A DNA stretch of 64,000 nt from Caecitellus pseudoparvulus (Eukaryota > Protista > Bigyra: Bicosoecida). Shown here piece by piece: positions 161 through 59,270 of the stretch. A program made the translations under genes and the position numbers. Location: NCBI GenBank assembly GCA_965644315.1, contig CBFFRQ010000041.1, forward strand, positions 178,506 to 242,505. The letters run 5' to 3'. The stretch's first letter is position 1; each line of letters begins with the position of its first letter. The notes beneath the pieces are model-generated. The model had not been told where the DNA came from. It did no database searches and worked only from the letters and a program-made list of their open reading frames with translations.

Positions 161-325
161 GGCGGGCGCCGGGCTCCCCGCCCGCCGGCACCACCCATCG
201 TGAAGAGTGTCAGCCCGTCGTGCTTCCTCAACACACTCCCGCCTTTGCTGTCGGCGGAACCGGAGCACACAAGCAAGGGGACGTGACACAGTGCAATGCA
301 TTGCGTGCGCGTGTGCGGGGCCATG

Positions 326-2484
326 CTACGCCGCTGGTGCGAAACTCAGGCGGCGTTGGCGCGGGACGCCATCCGTCACAGCACGTCGCAGGGGAGGCCT
401 CGGCGCCGGCGTCAAACTCGTTTCTTGCCCAGACGCACTGCGATGCAGGGGTGGGGGGCTGTTCGCCTCAATGTCAAAGTGCTCCTGGTCAGCGCTGGGT
501 CCCTGCCCACCTTCCTCGGGCGTGGGTGGCTTGACGGTGGCAGCGAGCGGCAGGTCGGCGTTGATGATGGGCGTGTGGTAGGGGTTGTAAATGGTGGTGG
601 TGGAGATGGGTTCGTCCAGGAGGGGCATGTCCGCCCCCCCCTCCTCCGGCAGGCGCGCGTCCAGCTCCAGCGCCTCTTCCCCCTCCTGCTCCCCACTCCG
701 CCGAGCATCTGGAAGAGGGCTGCCAGCTGGCCACTGGATGAGGGACGTGGCACCTGGAGGTAGAGTCAGGGCGGCCAAGCCCGAATCCTCGTCCGTGGGC
801 GACAGCGCCCGGCGTCCCTTCGTCACACGCAGCGGCGTCGCCAGCGTGTGCGCCATGCCCCGATTGCGCTCCCGGCTGGTGGCCTTGCGCTGGCGCAAGT
901 CTGTGGCCTTGGCGTACAGTGCGTACGGCACGTACTTCTTGCCAGAGCGCAGTTTCCGCGTCGCAACGCTCTCTGGCGCCGGCCCTGACTGCATGAAAGT
1001 GGAGCCGTCAGCCAGCTCAGGCGGGCGCCAGTTCGGGTCCAGGTACGACGACAGCGTCTGGATGATGCCTGTGGCAGAGGCGTGCACGTCCGCCGCCAGG
1101 CCAGCGACAGTTTCGTGCAGCCGCCGGCGGAAGAGTGTGTTGGCGCGGTCCTTGGTGAGAGGCCTGCCGTCCTCCCCTTCTGCGGCAGCCCCCTCGTCGC
1201 CGTCCTGCGCCAAACTCAGCATAGCTGCAGTGCTGGGGCGTGTGGCTCGCCGCCACCAGGCTTGCGCACTGGCCCCGCCGTCGTCGAAGGCGTCCGCTGG
1301 AGCGCTTTCCGGGAGGCCCTCAAGCTGCTCGGCGCTGGGGTCGTCTCCCCCCAGCTTGCGTTGCCGGGCGCCACCAGACACCCCCCGAATGTACTCGCCC
1401 AGGGGCGGGTGGGAAGGCGTGTTCTGCCTGCCTGTTCCGGGTCGCACAGGGAACTCCGACGTGGAGGACTGCACCACATCTTCGAAGAGCGGCGGGCAGC
1501 GCAGGAAGGGATTCTTGGACTCGTGGCTGGTGCCTCGCACCGGCAGACCGTACATCTTGCCCTGGGTGCCTGGAGGCGGCAGCGTCGCGGCGAGGACAGC
1601 GCCCAGGCGGGCCTCACGAGGACCGGGCGAGGGCGCGGTGCTGGGGCGCGTTGGGCCGATGCTCCACTTCCCCGATGACGGCCTGCGGGCTGTGGACTGC
1701 GCCGGAGGCCGACTACGAGCGAGAATGGCGCTGTCCCAGCCCAGCCGGCGCAGGTAGTCTGCGTCGCTGCGGGAGCCGGGGCGCAGCGTGGAGTTGACAG
1801 CGGTGCCGGCCAGGACATCCCGTGCAAAGTGCGAGGCGGCGTCCAGAGCTTGCCTCGCACTAGTAGGCGCGGCATGCACCCCCCCTACCTCGCCCCGTCG
1901 CTTGCTGCCTGGGCTGGGCACGCTGGAGGAGTGCCTGGGCTGCAGCAGGTGGGCATGCCCTTCGCCTCGGACAGCTTGCTCGGCCGCCGCTCGGGCTTGG
2001 GAGACTGTGGCTGTGGCAGACGAGGCAGTGAAGGGGGACTGGAAGACGAGTTTGTCAGGTTTGAATGCGTGGGCACGTTCGAGGGGCCCTGCCTTGGCTT
2101 CGCGAAAGATGCCCGCCGGACCAGCCCGCCGCTCAGACGCGTGGGTCGTCATGAGGCTTGCATGTCGGAAGTGGTCCACTGGCACGGCATCCACAGCGGC
2201 TGCCACCTCCTCAGCAGTCTGTGAGCATCCAGTGCGTGAAGGTAGCGCAAGCGTGTGGGCCACAGCGCAGCTTGCCCGCCAGCTGGTCGCCGCGACCGCG
2301 CGTTTCGGACGTCACTTACCCGGGGCCGAGCGTATGAAAACGACTCTTGCTGCAGCAGAAGCTCCTCCTCTCGAATGCGGCTGGGTGGTTGGCGCAGCGG
2401 GGCCACCTCCTTCGCGGCTGCAGCTGTCAGCCTGGCTCCCCGACTGGCGCCCCGGCTGCGCTGGGGATGCACGTTTGCAGGCAT
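326..2484 (-). CDS. hypothetical low-complexity protein, 2 exons
   Basis: Exon 1 runs 2484-2320 (MPANVHPQ...YARPR), followed by a GTAAGT..CAG intron at 2319-2219 (101 nt) that joins in frame to ORF 326..2263. AATGCA lies 24 nt after the stop. Confidence 0.6.
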
Positions 2485-2840
2485 CCTGCGCTTGCTTCGT
2501 GCAGACGAGCTGCAGCGGCACCCTGCACGAACAGGAAGCACAGCATGCGGCACTCCATCCCTCGGAGGTCAGTTTGAGGGTACTGCATTTGTGTGAAGTT
2601 TGACGGCTGAGGTGCAGCTGTCTGCAGCACTGAGCGGCTGTGCTGCACGCCTGCTCGCAGTTTGCCGAGAGGGCGGAGGTCGAGGAGGACAATGGCACCC
2701 CTGCAACACTTGCAAATTCACCCTTTTCAGTCCCACGCACCAAGTTCTAGCACGCAGCTGCACCTTGGAACCCAACGACAGCCGTGGAAGCGGCACCAGC
2801 ATCAGAGCAACACCACCCGTCATCACCCCTCCATCACAAC

Positions 2841-4337
2841 ATGGCTGCAACCGGCGAGGCAACTGGCGCAGCGGGGAAGGCGGTCACGCCAACTGAAGTT
2901 GTAACCAAGGCAGCAGTCGTCCTTGACTACGCTGACCTCAGCAAGCCCACTGAGGAGTTGAAGGACCGCATCGAGGCCGCGTTCGGGTGCGTGGCACAAA
3001 CATGTCCCGGGTTCCCCGCCGCCGCCTCCACGCTGCGCTGGGCGGCCCTTTGCTGTCACAGATACGACGGACTGGGCATCATTGCCATTACAAACGTACC
3101 AGGATATCTGGAGAAGCGCGAGGCGCTCCTGCCACGTGCACGGGAGTGAGTGAAGCATCGTTTTGCCTGCGTTTCGCTGGCGCCACAGCCTGTCAACACC
3201 TGATCGCCCTCTGCGGTGCTGCGCGTGCAGGTTGGCGCACCTACCAGCTGAGGCACTGAAGCAGTACGAGCATGAGGCTTCTCATTATTCTGTTGGGTGG
3301 AGCCATGGCAAGGAGATCTTCGAGGGTGCGGCAGCGTTGGCACCCGGCGCCAGCGCGTGAAGGATGCCCCACCCTGGCTCCGCTCGCTGACGGTGCGCAG
3401 GCAAGCCCGACTTCGCCAAGGGGTCGTTCTACGCCAACCCGCTGCATGACAAGCCCGTGGATGACGAAGAGCTCATCAAGAAGTGTGCGTGGCGGTGCAA
3501 GGGCCTGGATGGCAGCCAAGCCATGGTCGCGAGCAGGGCCCGTCACAATTGCCTGCGTCCTCCTCCACAGACCCCGCCTTCCTGGAGCCAAACATCTGGC
3601 CAACAGAGCACATCCCCGCGCTGGAGGGCGCCTTCAAAGACTTGGGCAACCTCATCGTCTCCGTGGGCCGGCAGCTGGCCGTGCACTGTGACGGCTTCGT
3701 GGCAGGGAAGGTGCCAGGCTACCCAGCCGACCGCCTGTCCAAGTTGCTGAAGGAGTCCCGCATGTGCAAGGCGCGCCTACTGTACTACTTCCCCCGTTCC
3801 GAGGAGGAGGCCAAGGCAGCTGCCGAGAAGGAGGCCTCCCTGCCGCCCATGGACGCCATCTCGAGCTGGTGCGGCTGGCACAACGACCACGGCTCCCTGA
3901 CCGGCCTGTGCCAGGCCATGTACACTGACGAGGCGGCAGGCGGCAAGGAGATCCCCAACCCAGACCCTTCTGCAGGCCTGTACATCCGCTCCCGCCAGCA
4001 CGAGCTGGTGAAGCTGCAGCTGCCGCCAGGGTGCCTGGCGTTCCAGATCGGCGAGTCCGCCCAGATCCACACTGGGGGCGCGCTGCAGGCGACGCCCCAC
4101 AGCGTGCGCGCGGCAGGGCAGGCCAATGTCGGGCGTGCCACATTGGCTGTGTTCATGGAGCCAGAGTGGGATGAGCCCATGGCACCTCCCAGCACGGGGG
4201 AGGAGGCGGTGGCGAAGGTGACCCAGGGCGCAAAGGGTGAGACCTTGCCCCCCGGCGTGCCGGCGCTGGACAGCCGGTGGAACCCGACCATGGACTTTGG
4301 CGAGTTCACACACGCCACCCTGAGCGCATACTACTGA
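2841..4337 (+). CDS. 2-oxoglutarate/Fe(II)-dependent oxygenase (IPNS/DIOX-like)
   Basis: Introns 2987-3061, 3146-3230, 3326-3400 and 3485-3570 give a continuous ORF. Motifs: YSVGWSHGKE, KGSFYANP, the HxD metal ligands in CGWHNDHGSLT, and a distal His in ATPHSV. Confidence 0.85.
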
Positions 4338-4410
4338 ATGCACAGGCGCCAGTCACGGGGGATGCATTGTTCATACATATAGTCAGGTGCGCGGGCCGGT
4401 GCCCGATGCG

Positions 4411-7058
4411 TCACGCCATTCCTGGCAAGCCGCATGCCATGGGGGAGGCAAGGGCGGGAGGCGAGGGCGTGTCCTGGGCGCGGCGCTTGGCCGCAGGCCG
4501 CAACTGGGGGGACCCCTCCTCATCCAGCTGCGTCATGCACTCCTCCAGGGTGAACCGGCTCACCACCGGTAAGGCTGCTGCGGTGTCTTGCCCCGCTCCC
4601 ACCGCCGCCAGGTCCAATACCCACTGCCTCAACAGCAGCGGGTGGGCTGCAGGCATGAAGCGGCTGCGCTGCATGCAGTGCATGAGGGCATGCTCCTCCA
4701 CCAGGGTGGGCCAGGGCACATCCAGGCCGTGGCCCACTAAGGCAGGCAAGGCGGGCGGAGGCAGGGAGGCGTGCAGGTGAGCCGGGTGCGCTGCCTGCGA
4801 CGGGGCAACGTGCACCCAGGCCAGAGCGGCACCCAGCAGGATGCCACGCCACGAAGCTGGTGTGAGCGGGATGACGGGGATGTGCTGCTGGTCATGCGGA
4901 ACTTGCTTCCGCTGCCACCCTGTGGCCAGCTGGGCTGACCCGCGCAAGGCCAGGGACAGGGCATACGCGACGCACTGCGCGGCTTGGCCATGCTTCTGCA
5001 GGACACCAGAAGCACCAGCCTCACCGCACAGGCTGCCCACCATGGCCAGCACCTCCTGCAGCCACTCGCACACCTGGGGGGAAGAGGGGCAGGCGGAAGG
5101 GGGAGGGTACGCGGGCGCTGCCGCGATGGGGCTGCGAGAGCCAGCTGATGCCTCATCCCCAGAGCGCGGCCCCTCGTCTTGTCCCAGGATCAGGTGCAGG
5201 GTGCCCTTTGCCGCAGGCCCCCGGGTGGGGGAGCCGTTGCACGCCACGTGCAGGTCCGGCTGCAGGCCGCCTCCGGACGGGGCCAGGGGCAGCACGTCCA
5301 TAGCAGTGGGGGGGTACCCGACGGGAGGCGCTGTTCCCGCTGCCAACAGGCCGTGCTGTAGCCCCAGACGGGCGGCACAGGAGGGCAAGGCTTCCTGCGC
5401 CGCCAGCGGCAGGCGTGGCGTCAGCCTCTGCGTCGCTCGGCGTACCATGGCGGCGACATCCCGAGGCAGCGCAGAGAGCAGGGACGATGCCGTGGCGGCA
5501 GCAGAGGTGGCTGGCAGCTGCAAGTGGGTGCCGGACCCGAGTGAGCCTGCCTGCAGGATGGCAATCTCATCCCCCGGCTCCTCCCACAGCCCGGGCACAG
5601 GCAGGCGGCTGGCAGGCTGGCGCAACTCCACCCCGGGCGGCAGCCCGTGCATGAGCTCAGCTTGGAAGTCCCGCAGGCTGGACAGCAAGCGGCGACAGGA
5701 CGCCAGCATGGCATCATGTGCCGCCCGGATGTGCTGCGTGGCAAAGCCAAGGTGTGTGGCCACGGCGGGCGCGGCCTGCCGCATAGCACCCTCCACGACA
5801 TCCAGGAGGAATGCCTCGTAGCCACGCTGGATGAAGGCGCGAGTGCTGGGGTCCAGCCACGTGTGCACAGGGCCACCCACCGTGGTCGGGCTTCGCAGGC
5901 AGGTGAGGATGGGCTGCAGCTGATCCGGCGTCAGGCACTGCGTCGCAGACTGCAGTCTGCTGTCATCCCGCTCAGGCAGCCACGTGCCACCCTCCACCTG
6001 GCCCAGCAGGCACATGAGGCTGTGGGCCGTGTAAGCGAACTGCTTGGCCGCTTCCGCAGTCCCGACAGCTGCGTGGCTGGCCTGCGTTGAAGCGTCCACA
6101 TAAGCCTCAAGGCCTTGCTGTCGCTCGAGCAGCTCCCGGCGGGCCAGGCGCAGCCCGACGGGGTGCACCGCTTGCTGGTGCACGGGGGCGCTGGCTGTGC
6201 TCTGGCGCACGTGGGAGGCCTTGGCCATGCTGGCCTCTGCCTCTGCAGCCAGCATGTCCAGCAGCGCCAGCTGCTGCGCCACCATCTCCCGCCGTGTCTC
6301 CACGGCGCGCTGCAGGCAAAAGACTCGCGTGAACTCCACCAGGGCCACGTGCACGTGTTCCGTCGCACGTGCTTGGATGGAGGCGGGCGTCTCACCCACC
6401 CACGGCATGGTCAGGAGAGCTTGCAGCATGCTGTCACTGAGCGGATGCGCGGTGCCCAGCCGGAAGAGGGCGGCTGCGTTGTGCACGTGCTCCACATCAG
6501 GCTGCACAGTCCACTCCCAGGGCCGCACGCCATCCAGTGAGGCATGTTGCATGGGGTCCCACGTCCACGTGGACGCTGCTGTGCTGCGCGTGCCAAGGGG
6601 TCCTTGGACCTCAGCGCGCAGGATGGCTTCTGGGGCGGACTGCGGCGCAACCAGCGCAGTGGGCGCCCCAGACTTTGACGTACTTTGCGATACTCGCTGA
6701 GGTGGCGTGCCTTCGTCCACCCTGCCAGTGCTGCGGCGTTGCGTTGGGGCGTTGGGTGCCGGCGCCAGGGGCTGCACCGCACCGATGCTGCCGTCATCGC
6801 TCCAGCTTTTGCACAGCCGCATCTGCTCAGCAATGCAGCGCACAATCGCACGGGAAAGTCTGCAAGAGGAACATTTGCGGTGGGCAATGAGTGCCTATGC
6901 GCCCCTTGCACGAGGCGTGGTGCACAGTTGAAGCGCCTCACGCACGGGATGGCTGCGGGATTTGGCAACACTTGAGGTTGTGGCTGCCGCCTGCGTTTAC
7001 GCCGCCTCATGGCAGCGGCACCAGAACCAGGAGGGCCCATCCCAAGAAAGGCCTGCAT
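4411..7058 (-). CDS. hypothetical protein (~850 aa), 2 exons, start uncertain (7058/7040/7010)
   Basis: An 810-aa ORF is joined by a GTGCGT..CAG intron (6945-6860, 86 nt) to an upstream exon containing the basic stretch RRRKRRR. AATGCA lies 43 nt after the stop. Confidence 0.6.
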
Positions 7059-7342
7059 ACTCGGTGCTGCAGGGGCCTGGGCAGCTCCAAAGCGAGCAGG
7101 TTTTCCACGAGGGGGGCTTGTGCGGGGAACGTCCCGACGAAGGCCTGATGCTCCACGGCTAACCTGGCCAATGGTTCTAGAAGTGCACGGCAATCGCCAA
7201 CATCTGCGAGCTAAACGTGGATGTCTGTCCAAGAAATCCATCAAGGTGAATTGGTATGACGCCTGCATTGCCACTTCGTGCCTGCAAACGCCAAGAGCTG
7301 CCTCCACTCCTCCTAAGCAAGCACCAGGAAGCCTGCTGTTGC

Positions 7343-8131
7343 TTACAGGCGGCCGCCAGCGGTGCCCATGGCCTCCACGGTGCCCTCATCGACCTTGGAG
7401 ATGGCCTTGCCGCTGTCAGCAGCGCCATCACCGTGCACCTCCATGAGGCGGGTGAGGTCGAACTTGGGTGCCTTGACGATCTTGACCTTGCGCAGGAAGA
7501 CGTTCTGCATGGGGAAGGTGCTCTCCACAGACTTGGTGATCTCGTCGGCGATGGAGCCAGCAACGAGCTTCTGGAACAGCTCCTTCATGTCGCCCTTGGA
7601 CACCTCCTTGTTCAGGACGTCGATCATGGTCTGGCGGATCTTGCGCACCTGAGCGGACTGGGCGTAGGCAGTGCGCTTGATCTGGTTCTGCTGCTTCTTG
7701 GTGAAGCCGATCACGAAGACGCGCACGGTGAAGCCGTCGGTGGTCTTGACGTCCACGTTGGCCTCGATGAGGGTCTGGAACTTGCGCACCAGGGAGCACA
7801 GCTTGTCCCGGGTGAAGGTCATGCCGTAGAAGTTGCACAGCACAGCAGAGCCCTGCACCTCCTCGCACACGAGGCGGATCTTGCGGAACTCGGCATCCTC
7901 GGCCTGCTTGTTCAGGTCACCCAGGGAGATCTCGAACACGCGGCCCTTGAGCTGCTCAGAGGCGATCTTGGTGCCGATGGTCTTGGTCACTGGGGTCTTG
8001 CCGCACAGGCGGTTCTGGAAGATGGCGGGCACCTTGATGTCGTACCACTCCTTGCGGGTGAAGGGGTCCACGACCTTCTTCTTGCCGCCCTTGCGGCCCT
8101 TGCCCAGCTTCTTGTTCTTGCCGATGGCCAT
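7343..8131 (-). CDS. RPS3A: 40S ribosomal protein eS1 (S3a)
   Basis: [35 protein letters not shown]...KAPKFDL is the canonical eS1 sequence, with strongly C/G-ending codons. Confidence 0.98.
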
Positions 8132-8570: not shown

Positions 8571-8735
8571 AGTTGATGCGTGTGAGACAGGGAAAACCCA
8601 CAACTCAGCACAGAGGAGGATGTTGACAGTGGAGATGGCTCTATGGAAAGTACACGCGGGCGGTGGCAGAGGTGGGCAGCTTGGGGCTTGCATTATGAGT
8701 TCCGGGAATGATGCAAAATGACATCCGCCGCAGCC

Positions 8736-10274
8736 TCACCGAGCTGCCGCATGCGCACTGAACACGCCGGGAGACTGAAGGTACGCAAAGTCCTGCAATA
8801 GTGAGGATGCAGAAGTTGCCTTTTCCCAGGGGGTTCCTGTCCCGTGCAATGTCCACTCCCGCGCTTGGGGGTGTGCTGGGGCGGCGGAGCGGGCAGCGCT
8901 CAGCGCCGCGTCCGCGATGAGGCGGGAGAACAATGCGTCGCGGGCTGCGTAAGTCAGCAGCCGCTGAGGCAAAGGTGCTGAGCCCCAGGCCTTGATCCGG
9001 TGCACGCCCCGCGACTTCCACGAGGTCGCCCCCAGCAAATGCCGTGAGAGGCGTGCCAGCCCCTTCTCACCTCCCACAGCCGCCCCCAGGGTGCCGCCGT
9101 CCACAGTGCCTGGCACAGGCACGCCCCAAGCAGTGGCGACGAGGTCGGCATCCCCTTCGACGCCAACCCCCACGACACGGGGTGCAGCGAGCACAGCAGC
9201 CTCCATTTCGGCGGCGGTGCCGTCTGCAGGCAGGCTCGCCTTGCCACTGTGCCCCAGCACTCGCAGCAAGGCGAGCAGGCCACTCGGCACCCCAGCCTCA
9301 TTCACGACGTCTGCCTCGCCGCCATCACACCACTCCAGCGCCGTGGCGTTCTCGCTGGGTGTGGCCGGGGTCCACGGTGCTTCCGCCTCCCCGAAAGCCT
9401 CCTGCAAGGCGGCGCGCTCCGCTTCTCCTACCTGCAGCGGCGGCGCGGTGAAGGCGCCGCCCGCCTTGGCAGCGTCCTCCCAAGCCGAGAAGGCCGCGGT
9501 GACAGCGTGAGCCAGCCACCGGTCAGTCTTCCCTGTGTACAGCGGGGAAGACGCGTCCCGGCGCATGGCAGGGGAAGCGTGGAACACGAGCACGCCTTTC
9601 GCTGTCGCCAGCTGCAATACCTGCAAGGATGGTGCAGACGTGGACCACTCTGCATCCAGGCCGAGCAGGTGCACGCCAGGCGCCAGGACGTGGTGCAAGA
9701 GCCACGCATGCACTACGCTGGCGTCTGCAGTGTATGTGACTGTCCCAGTGTGGCCCTGGGACAGCGCCAGCTGCTGTGTCTGGCTTTCCCAGGTGATGAC
9801 GTGGTCAGTGCGGCCGAGCAGCGAACCCAGCTCAGCTTGCAAGGCTGCAGCGGAGGAAAGCGGCACAGCATCCGGATACCCAGCGTCTGCCTCCAGCAGT
9901 TCACCCAGCAACTGCTCCGCGCTGGCACTTGCTGTCTCAGCGACTTCCTGTGCGGCAGTTGGCGCCTGCTTGCTGCACTGCTCTGCGGAAGCAGCTGGAG
10001 GTGCCGAGCAAGCCTGCTCAGCCGACAGGGGCGGTGTAGATGGACTGCCCTTCGCCCCAGAGGGCTTCTTTTGCTTCCTACCAGCTGGGGAGCGTGCCTT
10101 TGGAGTCTTTGCTTGCGAGCGCTGCTTCTTGCCAGGTGGCTCAGCTTGACTCGGCGGTGGCTGCGCAGGGCTGGGCTGTACAGGTTGGCCAGGGTCCACG
10201 TGCTTCACGCTGGCAGCATCCTTTGCCTTGGAAGGGGGCTCTTCGTCCTCAAACAAGTACGCGAACACTGACAT
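8736..10274 (-). CDS. 3'-5' exonuclease, DEDDy/WRN-exo-like
   Basis: ExoI LLGLDAEW, VLQLAT, ExoII GVGVEGD, and GLARLS...W..PL...LTYAARDA (ExoIII). Start taken at MSVFAYLF. Confidence 0.8.
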   Translation of the reverse strand: MSVFAYLFEDEEPPSKAKDAASVKHVDPGQPVQPSPAQPPPSQAEPPGKKQRSQAKTPKARSPAGRKQKKPSGAKGSPSTPPLSAEQACSAPPAASAEQCSKQAPTAAQEVAETASASAEQLLGELLEADAGYPDAVPLSSAAALQAELGSLLGRTDHVITWESQTQQLALSQGHTGTVTYTADASVVHAWLLHHVLAPGVHLLGLDAEWSTSAPSLQVLQLATAKGVLVFHASPAMRRDASSPLYTGKTDRWLAHAVTAAFSAWEDAAKAGGAFTAPPLQVGEAERAALQEAFGEAEAPWTPATPSENATALEWCDGGEADVVNEAGVPSGLLALLRVLGHSGKASLPADGTAAEMEAAVLAAPRVVGVGVEGDADLVATAWGVPVPGTVDGGTLGAAVGGEKGLARLSRHLLGATSWKSRGVHRIKAWGSAPLPQRLLTYAARDALFSRLIADAALSAARSAAPAHPQAREWTLHGTGTPWEKATSASSLLQDFAYLQSPGVFSAHAAAR

Positions 10275-10946
10275 GTGCCTGCTGAGGCTGCTCCTCGAGG
10301 TGAGCCCCACCTGGCTGCCTGTGGCAGGCAGCGGCGCGGCGAACGCGTGATGCGCAGGTGCACAGGTGATCAGCCCGAGTGAGGCAACATACCGAAACCA
10401 GGTCTGCACAGCCGCGAGGCGGTCAATGCTACGCGTATCATATTCACGGATCCCACCGTCAGCCCTTGAGGCTGTCTGCGGCGGCGTGCCGGACAAGGTC
10501 AGGCTCGGCGGGTGCGGATTTTGACCCGAGCGGGGCAGCAATTCCCACGCGTGGCTGTGATGTCGGCTTGGGCTGAACGCGTCAACCAAGGCAAGGTGTG
10601 TTTGTAGGGAGAGGGGTTTGGTGTTCAGCATGCAGTGTTCGTTGCATCTGATCCTTGCCTCGCTCTGCGCTGGCCCGGTCCAGCTCCAGCAGCAGTGCTC
10701 CAAAACCAGGCCGCACGGCCTGCCCCCAAAGCGGCGCATAGTGCTGCAGCCCAAGACCGCTGCTCACCCGACACCCGCACTCAAAAGCCGACTCCCAAGC
10801 ACCCAACTCACGGAAACATGCCTGACCACGGACACACGTGTGCGGAACGAGCCCGCTGCCCTCTCTGCGTTGCTGAGCAGCTGCGCGCCGCTTCTTTGCG
10901 GCGCCAGCCCTGAGCGTGCTGGCAGTCACAGCATGCGGCAAAGCCA

Positions 10947-14111: not shown

Positions 14112-14119
14112 AATGCATT
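14112..14119. terminator. palindromic AATGCATT, putative bidirectional poly(A) signal (kinase/ABCF)
   Basis: It is the only AATGCA for either gene in the 43-nt gap between the convergent stops. Confidence 0.65.
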
Positions 14120-41162: not shown

Positions 41163-41341
41163 TCTGGGAGGGTTTCGAGAGAGGATACGTCCACGGCCGA
41201 GAATGGCGGGAGGCGGGGGTGCCAGTGGGACTGTATTCGTGCGCGCGAGTCAGTGATGTGGCGCAGAGGTGGCATTGTGCTGAGGCTGGCCTTGGCCGAG
41301 CCACGCGGTGCAAGTCAACACCGAGCGGCTCCCGCTCCCGT

Positions 41342-41639
41342 CGTGCTCGCAGATACAGTGCACTGCCCAGTTAATCTTCACCTTGGCCGTCTTGCCCTAT
41401 AACCCGTCGGAGTGCTCGCCCCCAAGCCTGGCAGGCAAGCTTGTGTTGTCCGTCCAAGCAGCAGCCCCCGACTCCAACAAGGCACACTTCTAGCGAGAAA
41501 ACTCATGCGGTCCGGGGTAGCCCACCTGGTAGTGGGCGTAAGCACGCGCTGCTTGCGTGCACATCCCGACAGGGGCAGCTCCACCTGGCTGACCCCGGCT
41601 CCCGCAACGGCTGCAGGGCTGACCAGACCTCCAAGCACG
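41342..41639 (-). ncRNA. candidate structured RNA of unknown family
   Basis: Nested long-range helices with G-U pairs favouring the minus strand (see findings). Confidence 0.35.
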
Positions 41640-41899
41640 TAACTTGGCACAGGCACTTTGCAGAGACAAACATAACCACTGCATCAGACAGAATCCGTTG
41701 TTTGCCGTGCCTTTACGCGCGTTCTTCACGGTGCATACGTGCCCCACCGCAAACTAGCCACGGCAAGCTTGGCAAGGAGTGTGGGAGTTGCAGTGTGAAA
41801 CGCCGCCTCCCACGCAAAGCTGCTGAGCCTCGTCAACGGAGAAGAACTGCAGCAAGCGAGGCAGCAGGTTCAGTACTAGGCATTTATTAGTGAAGCCCC

Positions 41900-43343
41900 A
41901 TGGCAGAAGCCTTTTCAGAGACAGTCCCAGCAGCCGCTGCGGATGGAGAGGAAGTGGCAGCAACAGCGCCCGCCGGGCAGGGCGAGCAAGCCGACCTGGA
42001 CTTGACTTTGCGGCCGCCACCAGTAGAAACCGGGGTGCCCAAGGGCAGCACAGCCCAAGCCGCAGAGGCGTCGGGGGGCAGCACCCTGGAATCGCAAGGC
42101 TCCACCCCGGCGCGGCCAGCTGGGGAAGGAACTGCTGAGCCAGGCGAAGCCAGCAGCCTGCGGTTCGGAGGGCTGCGCTCCTTGCAGCTGCACGCAACTC
42201 TGGGAACGGGCACGTCTGGGAGGGTGAGGTTGGCATATCACAAGACTCGCAAAGCTTGGTACGCGCTGAAAATCCTGAAGAAGAGCGAGGTATGCTGTAG
42301 GAAGCTTGCACCGCCTGCGTTTCAGGAGCGTATCACTCGCCTTGCATTGTGGGCGCAGATCATCAAGATCAAGCAGTCCTCACACGTCAAGAGCGAAGTG
42401 CGCATCTTAAAGAAGATTGGGCACCCATTCCTGGTCGGCTTGTGAGTTTCGAGGCGGCGCGGGCGTTCGATTTGCCGGCCCCCTGCATGACTCCGAGCAC
42501 GCCCTGCCACCCCGCCAACCCAGGTGTGGCTTCCATCAAGACGCAAAGCGACTGTACCTTCTGCTGGAGTATGTTCCAGGTGGCGAGCTGTTTTCCCTCC
42601 TGCGCAAAGAAGTCCGGTGCGTGGTGTGTGTGCATGCGTGGCGCTTCGAGTCGCACACACACACACATTCCCCCAACCACAGGTTTTCCCCCGACGTCGC
42701 CAAGTTCTACACGTGCCAAATTGTGCTTGCGTTGGAGTACCTTCACTCCCTGGGCATCGTGTTCCGTGATCTGAAGCCGGAGAACATCCTCATTGGGAAG
42801 GATGGCTATGCGAAGGTGACTGACTTCGGCTTCGCCAAGGTGCTGTCAGGAGATCGGACGTACACGTTCTGTGGAACGCCAGAGTACTTGGCCCCTGAGA
42901 TCATCCAGAGCAAAGGCCACGACACGTCCGTGGACTGGTGGGCCCTGGGCATCCTCGTGTACGAGATGCTGGCAGGCTACCCGCCCTTCAGCGACGAGAA
43001 CCCGTTCGGCATCTACCAGAAGATTCTGTCGGGCAAAGTCATCTTCCCAGAGCACGTGCCTGCTGCTGCGCGGGACTTCGTGCGCAAACTTCTGAAAGCA
43101 GACTGGACACGGCGCCTGGGGTGCCAGCGGGGCGGCGCGGCAGACGTCAAGCGCCACAGGTGGTTTGAAGAGTTGGACTGGGGCACGGTGCTCGCCCGCG
43201 TCATCCCCGCGCCCTGGCTGCCGCCCATTGCCGCAGAGGACGACACGAGGAACTTCGACGAGTACCCAGACAGCGACGGGGAGGGCGGAGCAGCACTGAG
43301 CGGCAAGGCTGCCACGTTGTTCGACGACTTGGGCGGCTTCTGA
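41900..43343 (+). CDS. cAMP-dependent protein kinase catalytic subunit (PKA-C/PRKX-like)
   Basis: LGTGTSGRV, EYVPGGELF, FRDLKPEN, TDFGFAK, TFCGTPEYLAPE, VDWWALG and DTRNFDEYPD. Introns 42290-42358, 42442-42523 and 42617-42682. Confidence 0.92.
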
Positions 43344-43387
43344 ATGCAGGTTGCGCGAGGTTCTGTGCATTGAGACACTGCAGGGCA

Positions 43388-44496
43388 CTACACTTCCACT
43401 CCTGGGTTGGCCTCCTTCCATGCGGCCAGCTCGCTCGCAAAGCGCTCCTTGTCCGCGGCTGCCTTGGCCTTCCACTCCGCCTGGTCAGCCTCCTTCCACA
43501 TGGCGCCCAGGATCTTGCCCAACTCGGGGATCTTGGCGTCAGGGTTGGCGGCCTTCACCTCAGGGCGCACGCTCTGAGTGAACAGCATGTACGGCCCCAG
43601 AGCTGCCTTGGGGTACCCTTCGGGCTTGGCCTTCTTGGCCTTCTTGGCCTTGGTCTTGCCCGCGTCCGCGCCTTCGCTCCGGCTGCTGGCACGCTTCGTT
43701 CCCTTGGTCTTCTTCACAGGGGAAGAGCTGCCAGCAGCTGCCACCGCCTTGGCGGGTGCAGCCTTCACGTTGCTGTGGGGCTTGGCCAAGAAGGCCACCA
43801 GGCGGGAGGCCAGCTCCAGGGAGGCACCACTCTTGTCCAGGCCCATGAAGGCCAGCGCGTCCTTCAGCAGGGCGATGGTCCACACCTTGGAAGACGTGAT
43901 GCGCTCCACAATCTTCTCCGCATCGAAGCCTGCAGCATCGTACCCACAGAAAGCGCGGATGTTCTTCTTGCGGGAAGCAACAGCGCCCTGAGCAGGGGGG
44001 GGGGCGGCGGCGGCGTGGCTTCGCCTGCGCAAGCACCTTCTGCGCAAGCGCCGGGCGTCGCACCTGCGTGCCAAACAGCAGGCGATGGATCTGCTTCAGA
44101 ATCTCCACATCAGCCGTCACACGGGACAGGTGGTAGTTCACTGCGTTGGAGGTCGGGTGGACGAGTCGTTCGGGCGCTGCAGGTCTGGCGTGGTGACGTT
44201 CTGCGAGTGCGGAAATTGAACACGCCAACACCCGCAAACTGCAAACGCAGTTCCCAGCCGCTTATCGCGCCCCACTCGACATTCCACTCACCAATGTCAA
44301 GATCCCCCAGCTTGACACCTTCTCCCTGTGGAAAAGGTCGCAAAAGAGTCTTCCGTGACATGCCAGAGAGCATGCAGGCGTGTTGATGCACACCAACCTT
44401 CGGCACAGCAAAAGCCTTGCCAGTGCCTGCCTGAGGACCCTCGGGCATCAGACGGGCAGGGGGCACCCTGGAGCGACCCTCAACTGCAGCAGCCAT
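43388..44496 (-). CDS. DEK-like N-terminal (SAP/pseudo-SAP) domain fused to an HMG box
   Basis: Introns 44397-44326, 44291-44141 and 44063-43988 give GEGVKLGDLDIVNYHL..LKQIHRLLFG..RKKNIRAFCGY..LVAFLAKP (DEK), then PKAALGPYMLF..VKAANPDAKIPELGKILGAMWK (HMG). Confidence 0.8.
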
Positions 44497-44783
44497 GGCG
44501 AGTGTGGGTGGGAGGTGTGGTACTGCTGCGGCTGCGGCAGTACGAGTGCAACGATGCGACGCTGAGTCAGAGACGCAGTGATGGAAGGTGGGCACCGTCC
44601 AGGGACATACGGAAAGCTGGTGGCGGAGAAAGCGGCACAGCGGGGCTCGTGTTGGGCTGAAATAGTTGATTGTGCCGCTAGCTGTGCATTGCTCGCTCGA
44701 CCATGCTGCTGCTGGGAGGGGGGGGCGATGCTCGTTGGAGCCCCCTGCGCGCAAGCACTTGGACGAGCTGTGGGCTGAGAAGG

Positions 44784-47700
44784 CTACTTGGCGCCTTGCG
44801 CCGTGTCGCTCATGCCCCCCGGCACGTGCTGGATACCAACAATCATCCTAGAGGCGTCGTCGTGCTCAGCTGACCCTGCACTGTCCATTGACAGCATGCT
44901 GGCGGTGTGGCTGGTGGGAATGGCCTGCAGCGGCCGCGCCGCAAGGTTGGGCATGCTGACCACTCCACCCCGAGAGGGGGGCATTTCGCCACTGCCATGC
45001 GAGTCTGACGTGTCCTGGCTCTCCAAGTGCGCCGCGTCTACCTGCTGGAAGGTGGGGCCCGCATGCACTGCAGAGTCGTACGTCTCACCCCGTGTCCCAG
45101 TCAAGCTTGCCAGCGAATCAGTGGACGGAAAGCGGGACGCTCGCAGCATTGTGGACATTGCCAGCTTGCTGGCCGTGGGGCCCCTGACTCGGGTGTCCCC
45201 AACCCCCTGCGTCGCGGCGGGCTTGATGGGCGGCTGCCGCCGCAGGGCCAGGTGAGCTTCGGCGAGTGGCCTCCGAATGGTGGAAGCATGGCTGGCCCTG
45301 CGCTGCCGCCTGGCTGCCCCAGCCTCCAGACGAGACGCCGCACACGCTGTGTCAGACGCGTAACCAGGCAAGTCTGCCGCCAGGTGGCGACGGGGCGCAC
45401 GTGCAGCAGAGAGGCTGCGTGCCTTGCGACGGCGCGTGGGCGCGGCGGAGCCCCCTGCCGCGGCAGCAGCGGCAGCTTGTCCCACAGGCACTCGCCAGTC
45501 AGAGTTGTGCTCCCGGAGGTGCAGCAGGCTGAGAACTGGGGCATTCGCCCAAGCAGTGCGCAGGGCTTGGCGCGTGCGAGGATCAGACATGCCAGCTGCG
45601 CGAGCGACAGACACAGCCTTGCTGCGCTGGAACAGCGTGCGCGACCGGGGAAGTACCCCCAGCAAGTACTCGTAGCCCTGTGCGAGAGAGTGGGCATCCA
45701 GGGCTGTCGACACGTCAGCGCTGGGGTGAGGGTGCCCAGCGCTGGCGCCAGGCAAAGCGGGGGGCAGAGGCGACGCCCGCACCGTTGCCAGCTGAGAGGC
45801 GGTAGTTGGGCTTGCCGCGAGAGGGGACCGGGGCGCGTGTGGCCACATGCTTGGGCGATCCACGCGCAGGTACTTCGCCTGGGCCGTCGTCATGAACACG
45901 GGCGCGGCAGACATGCCGGCAGACTGGGAGGCGTACACTGCCAGGCGAGCCTGCTCCACGTCGTCGCCTGCTGCGTCTGCCGGGCGCCCTGTCTGCCACC
46001 ACCGCTTGGAACCCAGCTCAAGCGCAGTGCGGCGGCGCCAGGCACACGAGGGGACACGGCGGTACCCCGGCAGAGACGCCACGGCACACCACAGCGTGGC
46101 ATCGTGGCTGCCAGGCGGCACGGTGTGCATGACATCGTCATTAGGTGACGTTGCCAGCTCCACGTAGCCGGAGGAGGGAGGGGCCACTGCCGAACCACCG
46201 CCCCCACCAAGGGTACTACTGTGTGACGCTGAAGGGGAGAGAGCGGAGTCGCCATGGCCGTGCCAGAACTTCTGCGCGCTGGCTGTGGAGGTGGGGCGAG
46301 CTGGTGTTGACACGCCACGGATGCCCGTGGCGGGTGGCGGGCGGGCAGCACCACTGCCCAGCGTGGCCCTCATGCTCGCCGCATCTGCCACAGGCAGACG
46401 CCCCTCCCCCAGGACCAGGGGCTTCATGGCGGGGTTCATGGCGGACCCGCCCAGCTTCGAACCAGCAGCACGTTTGGACGCCGAGGCCTGTGCAGCGGCT
46501 GCGGCGGCTGCAGCAGGGGAGCTGATGAGCACGCCACTGTCAGCGGCGCCTGCCCCCGCGGGACCGACTGCGGTTGATGAGAGGCGCGAAGCAGCCCGCT
46601 GCCCGACGTGGCGCAGCTGGCGCTTGGTGTGCACCTCTGCCATGAGCGCTGCATGCTGCTGCGTGAACAGCCTTGCGTGGCGGTCAGGAATGAGTAAGAG
46701 GCGGGTGCCCTTGCTGAACCACCGCCACTCGTCCCCGCCGGCACGCTTCTTCGGCAGGTCAAGGTACGCAAAGGCGCGACGGTGCACGTAGAACTCGGAG
46801 TCCTCTAGCTCTTGCAGGCCGCCCTTCGTAGTGCGCGCGTGGTAGTCCGGGTCGTACTCATCAGCCCCAGCTTCCGCGTCACCTCCCAGGCCGATGGTGC
46901 GCGTGAAGTTGCCTACCCACCCCGCCACGCTGTCCATGAAGGAGTTGGAGGACTGGCGAGGTGCTTGAATGGACTCAGCCTCAGCTGCGTGCCCGCCGCC
47001 CATGGCGCCCATCTCCACGTCGCCTTCCTCCTCGTAAAAGCTGTCATCAGCATAAGCCAGCGTCGGGGACTCGCACCCAGCTGCAGCTCCACTGCCACCA
47101 CCTGGGGCGTCTTGGGGCGGCGTTTCAAAGCTCGCCACCCCCACACACTGCGCCACCTCCAATGCGCTTGCTGAGCGAATGTGAGTGCGGGAGGGCAGGG
47201 AAATGTCGCTCATGCTTTTTGGGGCCATGATGGCGCCGCCAGCCTCTTCCGCAGCAAGGCGGCCAGACCCTGAGCGCGAGATGCCGATGGGCTCACCCAC
47301 CGTGGTCACACGCTGGGGCGTCGGGCGCAGGCGTCGGCTGCTGGCGGGGGGCATGCGCATGCGCTGCCTCTCGACAAAGAGCCGGTCAGCGAGCAGTGCA
47401 GCCCTGCGGTTCTTGGGCACCAGCTCCGCGCCTGTGAGCAGGATGGCGCGGTAGGGGATGCGGATGGGGCGTTTCGGCTCTGGCCGCACAAACTCCGTGT
47501 CCTGAATGATCTGCCTGATCTGGGCGGGCTTCAGGCTGATCTTCAGCTCCGCTGCCAAGAGAGCCTCGGCGACGATGACCGCCGCCATGCGGCACAGCAC
47601 CTCCTCCAGCGGCGCGGCGATGCGGCGGGGGATGGATACGTCTCGGTTGGGCTTGGACTTGAGCAGGCGGAAGATGTCCGACGCAGAGAAGTACACGGCC

Positions 47701-50700
47701 ACGACCGGCCCGTTGCAGACGCTGGACACCAGCGTGCGCTGCCCCGTCAACATGCTGAGCAAGCCAACCACAGCGCCTGACCCGACGGTGTCGATGAGGC
47801 GCCCCGCTTGCTTGTTTGAGTGCAGGGTGGACGTGACCAGGCGAGTCAGCAGGTTCCCTGTGCGGGAGCCGGCGCTGCTGTGGCTGTCAGCACGGGAAGC
47901 GGTGATGGAGTCCGAGCCTTCCGTTGCGGAGCGCACCATGGCAGCAGCTGTGGAGCCAGTCACCGTCAGGCCCCGCGTCAGGTTGCGCGAGCGCGACTTG
48001 GACAGGCCCTCCATTACCTCAGCGGCTTGCCCCGTGCCCATGGGGCCCAGCTCGTACCGGCCTTTCGCGGCTGCGTGGGACTCGTACCTGGTCTTCTCGC
48101 GGCCTGTCGCACGGGCCCACTTGTAGGCAGCTGCCGTCGCTGCAGAGCTTACAGCCGACCCTGACCCAGCCAGGTCTGGCGTGGCGGCACCTGAGGACGT
48201 GGGGCTGATGCGCCGCATGATGCTGACAGAGCCGCGCACGATGATGTAGAAGCCGCTAGACTTCTCCGACTGGTTCATGATGGTGTCCCCGTCTTGGTAC
48301 ACCTTGCGGTGCGAGTGTGTGTACAGAGCGTTGAAGGTGTCGTCATCCAGGTCTGCCAAGTAGCCCACGTTGCGGAGGAGGTCCACTTCGCTGGGTGCCT
48401 TGGTCGCAATCTTGACCCGCTTCCAGGCAGAGTACACGCGCTCTGAAATGGCCTTGTGCTCACGAGCCTCGATTTCACCATGTGCCTGCAGGCGCTTGGC
48501 GACGTTCGCGATGTCATGAATGAGCGCGCGCATGACGTGCTTGGTCTTGACGGCGCCTGCCAGCTCCGGCAGTGTGGCCTCCACATCAGCCAAGTACCCT
48601 TGGCCGAGCGACACCTGTGCCAGGGACTCCTTCACGATGGCCTTGGCCACAGTTCGGCTGCGGATGACTTTGTGGAAGATGTGGTGCACGGCGCGGTGCC
48701 CCTCGATGAAGCCAAACACCAGGTCGAACTCGAAGGACATGCTCTCCAACAGCCACCACTGGCTGAAGTCTGGCAGGAACGTGCACAGGGCCTTCAGGGC
48801 CTCTCGCAAGGGGTTGGCATGGATCAAGTGCTGCACCACTTCGAAATCCTGCAGGCTCTGTGCGGGGCGGTCTTGGCAGCTGGATGCTGCTTCCTGCAGT
48901 TGTGTGACAGCCGCTCGTCCCACCATGCCGCTCTCAAAGAGCTCCCAGTACTCCGCCTTGAGTAGATTGTAAAACCGGTACCGACCTTCTGACAGCAGGT
49001 CGTCGTCCAGAGCTTGAGCGCCCTGCGTTGTGGAGGCGGCTCGCGCCCTCAGCGCAGCTGGCTTAAAGTCTTGATGCTTGCCGTAGCGCGTGAGGAAGGC
49101 CTCGCCGCCATCTGATCCATCCTTCTGGAATGGCGGTGTGGACGCGCCGTCCCTGCCAAACCCCGACACGGAGTGCGTGCGGCGCCGCAGGGAAGGTGTC
49201 TCGCTGGTGCTCCTTCCATCCAAGCTTGTCGAGTGTGCTCGTGTGGGTCGCAAAGGAGGGCGGGAGCCCGACTTCAGGTGCCGCCCGCCAGACGATGCGC
49301 TGGACGCCGAGATGGTGCGCTTCACCGGGATGGGCGCTTGCTCCCCAACACTCGCCGACAGGTCGGGGGGGGAAGCGGAGGGTCCACGGGCGGCGATGCC
49401 CAGCACACGGGGAGGGGCGGCACCGACTGCGGCGTGGTGCTCCGCAACATCCTCCGCCTCCTCCAACCGCCCCTTCATGGAGCTCACACTGCCTGCAACA
49501 GACTCGACACTGGCGGCGTCGCTGTCCGACACTGTCGCGCCACCTCCACTTGAGCCCGACAGGTCGGAGCGGGAGGAATTTGTGTACAGGCTCTCCTCAC
49601 TGGTGGCAGTGAGGGCGCTGCCAACGCTCGCAGCATCGTCCCCCTCATTGTCGCTGGCATACCCGTCAGCTGGGCCAGCGGGTGCCGCGGCACCTGGCGT
49701 CACAACTCCGCTAGAGGCGGGCGGTGGATCCAGGACGCCCTCTGAGGCGTCAGCTGGGTTCTTTTTCGTCCTGCGCTTGCCACGCCCCTTGCGTCGGCGT
49801 GCTCTGCGCTTGGCGCTGTCACCCCGGGCCACCCGCGCCGCACCACACATGCCTGCATCGCCTGCCTCGGGACTCTCGGAATCTTCCGTGACCACCACCA
49901 GGGGTGATGTTGGGCTCAGGGGCGTGCCCCCGGCCTGCCGCCGCGTCACGCCCAAACCGAAGCGCCCACTGTGCCCACGCATGTCAGAACTGGAGCCAGA
50001 CTCCTCAATGGTGCTGAGTTCGTGGGGCAGCTTCACCTTAGGGTGTGGGACAGGCGCCGGGCCAGTGCCCTTGCTGTCTTCCAAAACCACTGCTGCATGC
50101 TTGGGCTCCGGGGAGGAGCTGAGCACACCCAGCAGTGGCGGTGTGGACACCGGCCCCTTCAAAGGCGGCCCCGGCAGATCACTGCTTGCCAACTGCGCCA
50201 CACGCACTGGGCGTGCTGATGCGCCGGCTTGACTGCCTGCTTTTGCCGCGCTGGTGGGCTGCGGGCCATCCAGAGACAGCGGGGCGTGCCCCAGGGCGCC
50301 AGCCGGGGCCAGGCGTGCTCGCAGGGCAGGCGACGTCCCCAGCACGATCTCCTCCTCCTCCTTGAGCGGCACACAGGCGGTGCACACGGCACAGCGGTCT
50401 GGGCAGCAAGCACACCATGCGCAGTGACTGCGCAGGAAGTGGCGCACGCCGCCAGACCTCGCCGCCTGGGCGAAGCGGTTCCGGGCTTGCAGCGCTTGCA
50501 GCTGGGCGTACAGGTCGTCAAAGACCGTGCCCATGAAGCTCTCCACGGCGGCCCAGTCCACTGACGAGTACGAAGGGTCCCCTCGCAGCTGGCGGTGCTT
50601 GGCCAGGGTGTGGTGTTCGATGTGGTGCAGGGCTGTCGCGAACATGAGCTCGCTGGCCTCCGTGCGGCTGACCAGGCCCAAGTACTTCAGCAGGGTGCTG

Positions 50701-52183
50701 GTGGTGGAGGCGTTCACGAGCAGGGTCAGCGCGGCAATGCCTGCCATGTAGAACAGGAAGCGCGCGGCAGTCTCGGAGTCCTGCTCCTCCTCGTCCAGGA
50801 AGAGAGCCAGCACGAGGCCGACAGCACCGCGCAGGCCGGACCAAGACATGACAATGATCTCATTGAAGGTGATGCCGTACCCAAGGTTGCGCAGGACAGG
50901 CCACATGATGACCAAGGTCAGGAAACGCACGACATTCAAGACGAGATACAGCAGCAGCAGCCAGAGCCAGTCGGAGCCGCTGATGAACTCGGAGTTGAAG
51001 CCCCGTTCCATGATGACTGCCCCAGACAGCACAAACACGACGGTATTGGCCAGGTACTCCACCATTTCCCAGAACTCGTGCAGGGTCTCGTGCTCATGCA
51101 CGGCTGTCCGGCCCCCGGCAGCCATGGCCAGGCCCAAGGCCACCGTCGCCAGCACGCCGCTCACGTGCACAGGAGTGACTTCAGCCAGCACGAACGTGCC
51201 GTAGGCAGCAAAGACAGTGGTGGCGATCTGCGCGACGATGTCAAAGTGCAGGGCATTCAGCACTCGGACAGTGATCCACCCGGCCGCCACCCCCAGCGCG
51301 ACGCCGCCCAGGGAGAGCTGTGCGAAGAAGGCCACTGTCTCCCCCCCGTCACGCGCCTGCCCCTTCATGGCATCTGCGAAGACGATGAAGAGCACCATGG
51401 CAGTTCCATCGTTGAACAGCGACTCGCCCTCGATGAGCAAGCTCAGGCGTGGAGAAGCTCCCAATTCACGGAGCAGGGCCACCTGTGCAGAGCAGCAAAG
51501 GCCCGGAGTGCATCGCTTGCGTTTCATGGCGCTGGCAGCGTTTCAGCGGTGCACCCGCACCGCAGAGGGCACGCACCACAGCCACGGGATCGGTGGCGCT
51601 CAACATGGCGCCGAATGCCAGCCCTTCGTTCCAGCCCCACCCGAAGGGCATGGCGTAGATGGCAAAGAGGGCCGTCATGATGGAGGCCAGGGCCACTCCC
51701 GGCACAGCCAGCACCAGCATCTGGGGGATTTCCCGGGAGAACACATGGTAATCAACAGCCATTGCCGAGCCGAAGATGAGCGCGGGCAAGAAGATGACGA
51801 GGATGAGCTCGGGAGACACATTCACCCATGACTCCAGGCTGTCCCCCAGGATGCCCATGCCGCCTTGCAGGTGCCAGAACCCCAAGAGAGTGCCGATGAC
51901 CTGCATGTGAGGGTGTGTGCGGAAGCTGCTGGCTGGGCGTGGTTGGCGCAAGCGTGGCGCCCCGGCTCACCAACAACACCACAGTGTATGGCAGCAGCAG
52001 CCAGCGGCCGGCACTGCGGCTGAGGATGCCCAGCAGCACAGCAGCAAACATGAACACCGCTCCGCCCGTGTGGTCCACGTGAAAAGACCGGGCAGCGTCA
52101 TGCTCCCCGTGCCCCGCCTCTTCATTGGCGGCAGCCACGGCGCATCCCACCGCGAGAAGCAGGGGCAGCAGCCCTGACATCAT
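44784..52183 (-). CDS. SOS1/NHX7-type Na+/H+ antiporter (CPA1) with a cNMP-binding-like domain and long low-complexity insertions
   Basis: IFLPALIF, LSATDPVAVV, IEGESLFNDGTA, FWEMVEYLANT, WSGLRGAVGL, and CNBD-like GFYIIVRGSV..GAVVGL. Introns 51970-51901 and 51576-51483. The 3' part may hide in-frame introns. Confidence 0.88.
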
Positions 52184-58226: not shown

Positions 58227-58328
58227 TCGCTTGGCGCCTTTCAAGTGTGAGACTGCTGTGAGGCTGCCTTGCGCTTGTGCCGCCCTGCCGGGCACCTGAA
58301 TGCACAACCACTGACACGCCCGCCACGT

Positions 58329-59091
58329 TCAAGACGCAGCTGTGAAGGGCATCTGCAGGGGTGACTCCACTGCCAGGTAATCTGACACGCTCATCCCAAG
58401 TGAATCTGTGCGCAAGCCTGCGTTGAAGTTGATGGACGTGCCTTGTTCCACAAGCGACGGGTCCAGCAGCGTGACGACGTGCGCCGTGGACGGCTGGGCC
58501 TGCTCCGAGGCGGGGCCCTGGGCGGAGAAAAGGCTTCCAAACGGGGGCACCGCACCGGAAAGGCAGTGGGCTACGGACCACACTGCCTCGGGGCTTGCGA
58601 GTGATGTCTTGCGTCCCAGGGCTTTCCTCAGCGTGCCCCAGTCCACGCGCTGCACAGCAGACATGACCAGGAGGGCGAAGCGCGCCTGGGGGAAGTCGAC
58701 ATGAAGGCTGCTCTTCTTTGGGAGGGCCACAAGCATGGCCTTGGCTCCGCTCGCCAGAGTGGCCCCTCGGATATCAGCAGCCTGCGGGGCGGGTGAGGAT
58801 TGTGTGCGGGAGGCCAGCTCTGTGATTCAGTCAGCGTGTGCGTACCTCTTGAGAAGTTTTCACTGGCGCATGGTGAGTGTGTTTGAAGGACACCTTCCGT
58901 GACGTCAAAAGCATCTTGATCTCTTCGAACATATGCGGGTCTTCTTCGGTTGGGATGACGCATTGCTGTGGTGAGGCAGCAGCTGCCGCCGCTGGCGTGC
59001 TAGCTGCGGATTTCGCTCGTGAACCAGCCTGCCTGCCTTGCGCCTGCACTTGCAGGGCATACAACGAAGTCAAGGTGGACAGCTCGTCCAT
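58329..59091 (-). CDS. stand-alone YbaK/ProX-family aminoacyl-tRNA deacylase (YeaK-like)
   Basis: AKAM (conserved Lys), SLASPE, GAVPPFG and INFNAG. Intron 58845-58782. Confidence 0.8.
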
Positions 59092-59270
59092 CGCGCATGA
59101 GCATTTGGAACAGTGCCAGCAGTGCTGCACGGGGGTGTAACGCCTGACATGGTTGCGAGAGCAATCTGATAAAGCAGGTTTGAGGATTGTGCTGCATTGA
59201 GCGACAGCATCAGCCCTCCCGCAAGACAAAACAAGAGCAGACTCAACATCGTCCGAAGGGCGGCTCGGAC

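Follow-up and report, generated by a model that had tools for sequence, protein, structure and literature searches.

The 64,000-nucleotide (nt) stretch of Caecitellus pseudoparvulus DNA analysed here, referred to as the window (G000:C41:178506-242505; assembly of 30.6 Mb in 215 contigs), has a GC content of approximately 64% and carries tightly packed genes on both strands; open reading frames (ORFs) are long, and the GT..AG introns are few in number and short (59-151 nt). Its sequence is matched in seawater metagenomes and metatranscriptomes; the nearest named protein matches, from stramenopiles among others, are only about 60% identical, and a six-frame family search of the whole genome gave no match to chlorophyll a/b-binding proteins (PF00504). 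We regard the organism as heterotrophic and marine, and probably a stramenopile. The element under study is the hexamer AATGCA, which recurs on the sense strand shortly after the stop codons of the genes in the window. We consider it very likely that, as AAUGCA in the RNA, it is the dominant near-upstream polyadenylation (poly(A)) signal hexamer of C. pseudoparvulus and its close relatives.

An earlier note on this DNA, made from the letters alone, had reported AATGCA after 20 of 25 genes. All 20 of the sites it named carry the exact hexamer on the strand in question, a further copy at 27415 (minus strand) and the variant AATGTA at 39400 are likewise present, and inspection of the window by hand puts the number of genes with the hexamer at about 20 of 24-25. 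Counted from the stop codon, the distance to AATGCA varies between -1 (stop and motif overlapping, TGAATGCA) and 93 nt. The sites are as follows:

297-302, minus strand: AATGCA, 23 nt past the stop of the minus-strand gene 326-2215, within the palindrome AATGCATT at 295-302
4337-4342, plus strand: AATGCA overlapping the TGA stop of the plus-strand gene ending at 4337
4363-4368, minus strand: AATGCA, 42 nt past the stop of the minus-strand gene 4411-6849, which is convergent with the plus-strand gene ending at 4337
7264-7269, minus strand: AATGCA, 73 nt past the TAA stop of the ribosomal protein S3a (RPS3a) gene (7343-8131, minus strand)
8689-8694, minus strand: AATGCA, 41 nt past the stop of the minus-strand gene 8736-10463
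14112-14119, both strands: palindrome AATGCATT between the convergent stops 14086 (plus) and 14130 (minus), which are 43 nt apart
18337-18342, plus strand: AATGCA, 91 nt past the stop at 18245
20904-20909, plus strand: AATGCA, 36 nt past the stop at 20867
22271-22276, minus strand: variant AATCCA, about 82 nt past the stop of the minus-strand gene 22359-26939, which has no exact AATGCA
22285-22290, plus strand: AATGCA, 6 nt past the stop at 22278
27415-27420, minus strand: AATGCA, a candidate signal within the last codons of the minus-strand ORF ending at 27405
33222-33229, both strands: palindrome AATGCATT between the convergent stops 33204 (plus) and 33232 (minus), which are 27 nt apart
37989-37994, plus strand: AATGCA, 33 nt past the stop at 37955
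39400-39405, plus strand: variant AATGTA, 37 nt past the stop at 39362
40653-40658, plus strand: AATGCA, 39 nt past the stop at 40613
40733-40738, minus strand: AATGCA, 10 nt past the TGA of a small spliced QCR9-like minus-strand gene
43343-43348, plus strand: AATGCA, sharing bases with the TGA stop codon of a kinase gene
43366-43371, minus strand: AATGCA, 16 nt past the stop of the four-exon minus-strand gene 43388-44653
44685-44690, minus strand: AATGCA, 93 nt past the stop of the minus-strand gene 44784-51527 (2247 amino acids)
58299-58304, plus strand: AATGCA, 72 nt past the stop at 58226
59193-59198, minus strand: AATGCA, 72 nt past the stop of the minus-strand gene 59271-61454

Over the whole window, AATGCA shows no excess (30 copies versus 26.1 ± 5.1 in dinucleotide shuffles). 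About 20 of these 30 copies lie 0-94 nt past a stop codon on the same strand, which places approximately two thirds of the copies in about 2% of the strand-length. The signal resides in the placement and strand of the hexamer, not in its abundance.

Two places in the window are of separate interest. At 41158-41163 (minus strand), a sense AATGCA overlaps the start codon of the small QCR9-like gene (A-ATG-CA) and is one of very few sense copies within a transcript body. At 44651-44690, promoter and terminator functions are crowded into a few dozen bases, with only about 32 nt between the transcript-contig 5' ends of one gene (44651-44653) and the upstream gene's poly(A) signal (44685-44690).

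Enrichment, strand and the convergent palindrome

The enrichment statistics cover 264 kb, comprising the window and 200 kb of contig C13, in which ORF ends were called with a codon-usage score; beyond this, genome-wide support comes from the palindrome count given below. Among all 4096 hexamers in the 120 nt downstream of 129 ORF ends, AATGCA ranked first, with 42 copies versus 3.5 expected. The hexamers next in the ranking were overlaps of AATGCA, and its position histogram peaked at 0-25 nt past the stop. In a refined set of 100 3' regions the motif was 13-fold enriched. At the background density of 0.23 copies per kb per strand, a copy is expected by chance in about 2.3% of 100-nt segments, which is near the rough estimate of 1-2% made beforehand. 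AATAAA and TGTAA, which had not been seen in the 3' gaps of the window, are also missing as signals from the refined set, where AATAAA does not occur (0.9 expected) and TGTAA is not enriched (3 versus 1.7 expected).

A whole-window count equal to the shuffle expectation would be in keeping with AATGCA being an artefact that arises by chance or from the base composition of AT-richer 3' untranslated regions (UTRs) in a GC-rich genome. However, the GC content stays near 60% on both flanks of the motif, other A/T-rich hexamers, AATAAA included, are not enriched, a reversed control of the palindrome is 46-fold rarer, and the motif is kept in 3' UTRs of relatives that are otherwise unalignable. Hexamer rank, coding depletion, poly(A) spacing and the strand test effectively refute this explanation, and we regard its probability as negligible.

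Strand preference was assessed by the presence or absence of a convergent neighbour, as incomplete ORF-based gene models blur the assignment of spacers to convergent, tandem and divergent classes. At the 52 3' ends for which the nearest 300 nt hold no convergent gene, AATGCA occurs 17 times on the sense strand and once on the antisense strand. Sense and antisense copies are nearly equal (20 and 18) at 3' ends with a convergent neighbour, the pattern to be expected were each copy to serve its own gene. In divergent 5'-5' spacers, the density of AATGCA is near background.

High-confidence coding segments (163 kb, window and C13) show a strand-specific purge of the motif. Sense copies number 2, versus 14.2 ± 3.6 in codon shuffles, an approximately 7-fold depletion that lies below the lowest count in 300 shuffles (4). 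Such a purge is predicted by a functional cleavage signal, not by a DNA-level site. The antisense strand of the same segments carries 27 copies versus 15.3 expected, equal to the maximum of the 300 codon shuffles; a possible cause is selection for terminating antisense transcription, another an effect of codon context. The antisense copies are distributed evenly along genes.

Most AATGCA copies are not palindromic, but AATGCA followed by TT is its own reverse complement, so that one 8-bp AATGCATT would end both genes of a convergent pair. Genome-wide, 1011 copies of AATGCATT were counted, versus 22 for the reversed control (46-fold). Three of them lie in the window (295-302, 14112-14119 and 33222-33229); the first serves the minus-strand gene 326-2215, and any plus-strand partner would end at or beyond the left window edge. 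A shared palindrome makes stop-to-stop spacers down to 27 nt possible. Because cleavage 10-14 nt past the shared palindrome would fall inside the last codons of the neighbouring gene, the mRNAs of the 14086/14130 and 33204/33232 pairs would each end within the neighbour's last codons and overlap in antisense by about 30 nt.

The abundance of the palindrome, and spacers so short that 3' ends abut the 5' end of the next gene, would also suit a DNA-level element, such as a palindromic terminator or roadblock protein site, or a part of the next gene's promoter, with poly(A) sites merely nearby. We regard this as highly unlikely, given that the majority of copies lack the palindrome, that orientation is 17:1 in favour of the sense strand where no convergent gene is near, that the coding depletion is confined to one strand, that divergent 5'-5' spacers are near background, and that poly(A) starts at a fixed short distance from the motif, as described in the following section.

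Transcript ends and the shape of the signal

Poly(A) tails place the cleavage site in two relatives. An RPS3a orthologue with 86% identity lies on a metagenome-derived NCBI contig (L031), whose genomic sequence reads AATGCA-TCAGTACTCTACAAGTC; the hexamer is kept in a 3' UTR that is otherwise unalignable. Three independent metatranscriptome contigs of this relative (L033, L034 and L035) read AATGCA-TCAGTACTCT(A) or AATGCA-TCAGTACTCTACA, followed by long A-runs that are not encoded in the genome (L031), and five further contigs stop inside the same stretch after AATGCA. In a second relative, an RPS3a transcript with 78% identity (L041) shows the stop codon, 22 nt, AATGCA, 12 nt and a poly(A) tail. 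The tails thus start 10-14 nt past AATGCA in all four tailed contigs.

For C. pseudoparvulus itself, Logan contigs of four RNA-type runs were mapped on 39200-45199, and splicing at GT..AG introns identifies them as transcripts. Their ends relative to the motifs are as follows:

Motif 40653-40658 (plus strand): contig ends at 40659 (X1) and 40666 (X8), 1 and 8 nt past the motif
Motif 40738 to 40733 (minus strand): two runs give a contig end at 40722, 11 nt past the motif
Motif 43371 to 43366 (minus strand): contig ends at 43365, 43355 and 43354, 1, 11 and 12 nt past the motif
Motif 43343-43348 (plus strand): contig end at 43360, 12 nt past the motif

Cleavage occurs 10-14 nt past AATGCA in the two relatives, and the same-species contig ends, at 1-12 nt, agree with this. 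The proposal of the earlier note, a lineage-specific AAUGCA poly(A) signal, is supported by the position of the tails and by these contig ends as well as by the 17:1 strand bias, the coding purge and the 46-fold palindrome excess.

Further RPS3a orthologues vary in what follows the stop codon. A genomic contig with 86% identity and 57% GC (L029) has CAATGCAGC about 74 nt past the stop. The contig of a 75% orthologue (L042) contains neither motif nor tail, three contigs of one 65% orthologue (L046-L048) end 9-10 nt past CATGCA, and in another (L049) AATCCA precedes the tail by 15 nt. A look-up of poly(A)-tailed RPS3a transcripts of the same species gave DNA contigs and L028 only, and for two other genes of the relative only genomic DNA was found, with no tailed transcripts.

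The base requirements of the signal were read from enrichment in the 3' regions. Among hexamers of the form AATxyA, xy = GC was enriched 13-fold, TC and GT 6-fold each, CC 5-fold and GA 4-fold. ATTGCA was enriched 4-fold, indicating that U is tolerated at position 2, and enrichment was lost on any change at position 1, 3 or 6. Immediately 5' of AATGCA, C is favoured (24/44). TGTG is weakly enriched downstream (17 versus 8.1, n=39), and nothing convincing was found around AATGCA in the way of auxiliary upstream or U/GU-rich elements.

In two RPS3a metatranscriptome contigs (L028 and L032), the 3' UTR gives way to unrelated sequence at nearly the same place, following GGAGTGGAG and GTGTGGA. Both probably represent chimeras of the assembly, and care is needed when 3' ends are defined from such contigs. 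The start of contig C13 is a separate observation: in L001 (G000:C13:1-10000), the stretch at about 1100-3000 is strongly AT-rich and of foreign-looking composition, with a minus-strand ORF at 1161-2924; the contig that it opens is GC-rich and 984 kb long.

Candidate reader of the hexamer

In the structure of the human CPSF160-WDR33-CPSF30-RNA complex, A1 and A2 of AAUAAA are bound by zinc finger 2 of CPSF30 and A4 and A5 by zinc finger 3, while the U3-A6 Hoogsteen pair packs against WDR33, and position 6 tolerates G poorly (bioRxiv 10.1101/209809). In C. pseudoparvulus, a CPSF30-YTH protein is encoded at L043 (G000:C24:49224-52538). Zinc finger 1 is missing from this protein, in which a YTH domain comes after three CCCH fingers. 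Zinc finger 2 (VVCRFWLNGRCMNASRCVFLH) is well conserved and aligns with human residues 63-86. Zinc finger 3 reads C-KLADR-C-TEPG-C-PFG-H, with a three-residue deletion relative to human CYFYSKFGECSNKECPFLH; this short C-X5-C finger has Lys and Leu at the positions of human Tyr97 and Phe98, which, if the superposition of fingers 2 and 3 reported in the structural study is followed, should line the A4 and A5 pockets. In an AATGCA-using relative (L053), the finger is C-KDGAD-C, and both KLADR and KDGAD are without an aromatic residue at the second position, as in some other protists. A 44%-GC relative (L051, L052) with the finger C-NYGLR-C has AATGAA, AATTCA and AATCCA past its genes. An intron follows immediately after the zinc finger 2 histidine of CPSF30 in L043 and in two relatives (L051 and L053), and the orthologue at L051 also matches the Dev_Cell_Death domain.

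The reading that we consider very likely, together with a proposed mechanism of recognition, is as follows: (i) AAUGCA lies on the sense strand of the mRNA, 0 to about 100 nt past the stop codon; (ii) in recognition, zinc finger 2 of CPSF30 would bind A1 and A2 and WDR33 the Hoogsteen pair of U3 and A6, both as they do in human, and the divergent short zinc finger 3 would bind G and C at positions 4-5; (iii) AAUUCA, AAUCCA, AAUGUA, AAUGAA and AUUGCA are rarer variants, positions 1, 3 and 6 being strict; (iv) cleavage and poly(A) addition take place 10-14 nt past the last base of AAUGCA; and (v) in convergent pairs, one 8-bp palindrome serves both genes. The idea that the reader is the same as for AAUAAA, the specificity factor of cleavage and polyadenylation (CPSF), arises because the tolerance pattern fits, positions 1, 3 and 6 being strict and position 2 open to U. 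Reading by CPSF30 and WDR33 of altered specificity, as the earlier note had also suggested, is the best-supported mechanism that we can infer, and a link between zinc finger 3 and the signal is plausible. It is possible, and we put this forward only tentatively, that the lineage has re-coded the positions read by zinc finger 3 from AA to GC, a natural switch of CPSF specificity, with the octamer AAUGCAUU ending both genes of convergent pairs. The self-complementary octamer may have helped intergenic spacers shrink to less than 50 bp.

The aromatic residues of the presumed A4/A5 pockets are replaced; the short C-X5-C form, however, is widespread among protist CPSF30s and on its own does not account for G and C at positions 4-5, and a remodelled zinc finger 3 was rejected as a specific correlate of AAUGCA. 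This weighs against the proposed reading, as do the following points. The tie between motif and CPSF comes from sequence comparison rather than from a structure or a binding experiment. No U- or GU-rich downstream element is seen, the composition being flat past the motif (n=39). Exact AATGCA is found at only about 37-50% of automatically called ORF ends, or 52% with variants, a lower bound because many called ends are internal exon ends, which make ORF-based 3' ends noisy. The same-species evidence consists of contig ends, which do not strictly define RNA ends, instead of A-tailed reads, and one transcript contig ends at 39402, within the AATGTA variant.

The common form of the short finger, its missing pocket aromatics and the indirect nature of the CPSF assignment would also accord with an RNA-level signal read by a different factor, for instance a lineage-specific RNA-binding protein or a UGCAU-type binder, with CPSF recruited indirectly. 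This appears unlikely to us, as AAUGCA retains A1, A2, U3 and A6, exactly the contacts of human zinc finger 2 and WDR33, as the tolerance of U at position 2 parallels AUUAAA, and as the distance of 10-14 nt to cleavage is that of CPSF.

CFIm25 is a further potential reader, proposed in the earlier note from the resemblance of UGCA to UGUA. The CFIm25-bound UGUA enhancer acts 40-100 nt upstream of cleavage. UGCA shares with it the letters UG-A; however, the spacing observed here is that of a CPSF hexamer, TGTA is not enriched in the 3' regions (23 versus 17.5), and a six-frame search of the 30.6 Mb assembly gave no match to CFIm25 (NUDIX_2, PF13869), absence from an assembly not being proof. 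This part of the earlier proposal is not upheld, and the result likewise speaks against a reader other than CPSF.

Comparison with known 3'-end signals

If AAUGCA is the dominant signal, it allows gene 3' ends to be annotated precisely by rule, and packed or overlapping genes to be told apart, here and in uncultured marine relatives, and it can serve as a terminator in expression constructs for the lineage. It would also offer a natural test case for the hexamer specificity of CPSF30 and WDR33, with four of six positions constant and only the zinc finger 3 positions changed, and would add a stramenopile lineage to the short list of those with a dominant non-AAUAAA signal. A full-text literature search, thin on subscription journals, returned no description of an AATGCA/AAUGCA poly(A) signal or of stramenopile, Pelagomonas or Cafeteria signals. 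We know of no description of the palindromic bidirectional form, which constitutes a compact answer to convergent termination.

The closest parallel is the AAUAAA/AUUAAA hexamer read by CPSF in animals and, more loosely, in plants, for which cleavage takes place 10-30 nt downstream. AAUGCA is likewise a sense-strand hexamer with cleavage 10-14 nt downstream; the two signals share A1, A2, U3 and A6, both accept U at position 2, coding segments are purged of the motif, and zinc finger 2 of CPSF30 is conserved. In contrast, positions 4-5 are G and C, so that AAUGCA is neither AAUAAA nor a single-base variant of it, and AATAAA occurs in 0 of the 100 3' regions. AAUGAA and AAUACA are rare human single variants, and AAUGCA combines both. 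The system here also differs in having no visible GU/U-rich downstream element and in a CPSF30 without zinc finger 1, with a short zinc finger 3 and a YTH domain.

Among protists, UGUAA of Chlamydomonas and other green algae is, like AAUGCA, a lineage-specific dominant near-upstream replacement of AAUAAA in GC-rich genomes. Its sequence differs, as it is without AAU, and TGTAA is not enriched here. The compact genomes of Giardia (signal AGURAAY) and Trichomonas (signal UAAA) resemble that of C. pseudoparvulus in that 3' UTRs are very short, the signal may extend into the stop codon (here as TGAATGCA) and one short motif accounts for most of the information, whereas sequence and lineage are different; to our knowledge, a bidirectional palindromic signal has not been described for either.

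Within the stramenopiles, Blastocystis has the motif TGTTTGTT downstream of the cleavage site, and polyadenylation creates stop codons (PMC4159000). Both lineages combine a non-canonical 3'-end motif with a compact genome, but in C. pseudoparvulus the motif lies upstream of cleavage and stop codons are encoded in the genes. Lineage-specific signals are thus already represented by UGUAA, AGURAAY, UAAA and the Blastocystis motif, and AAUGCA adds to them.

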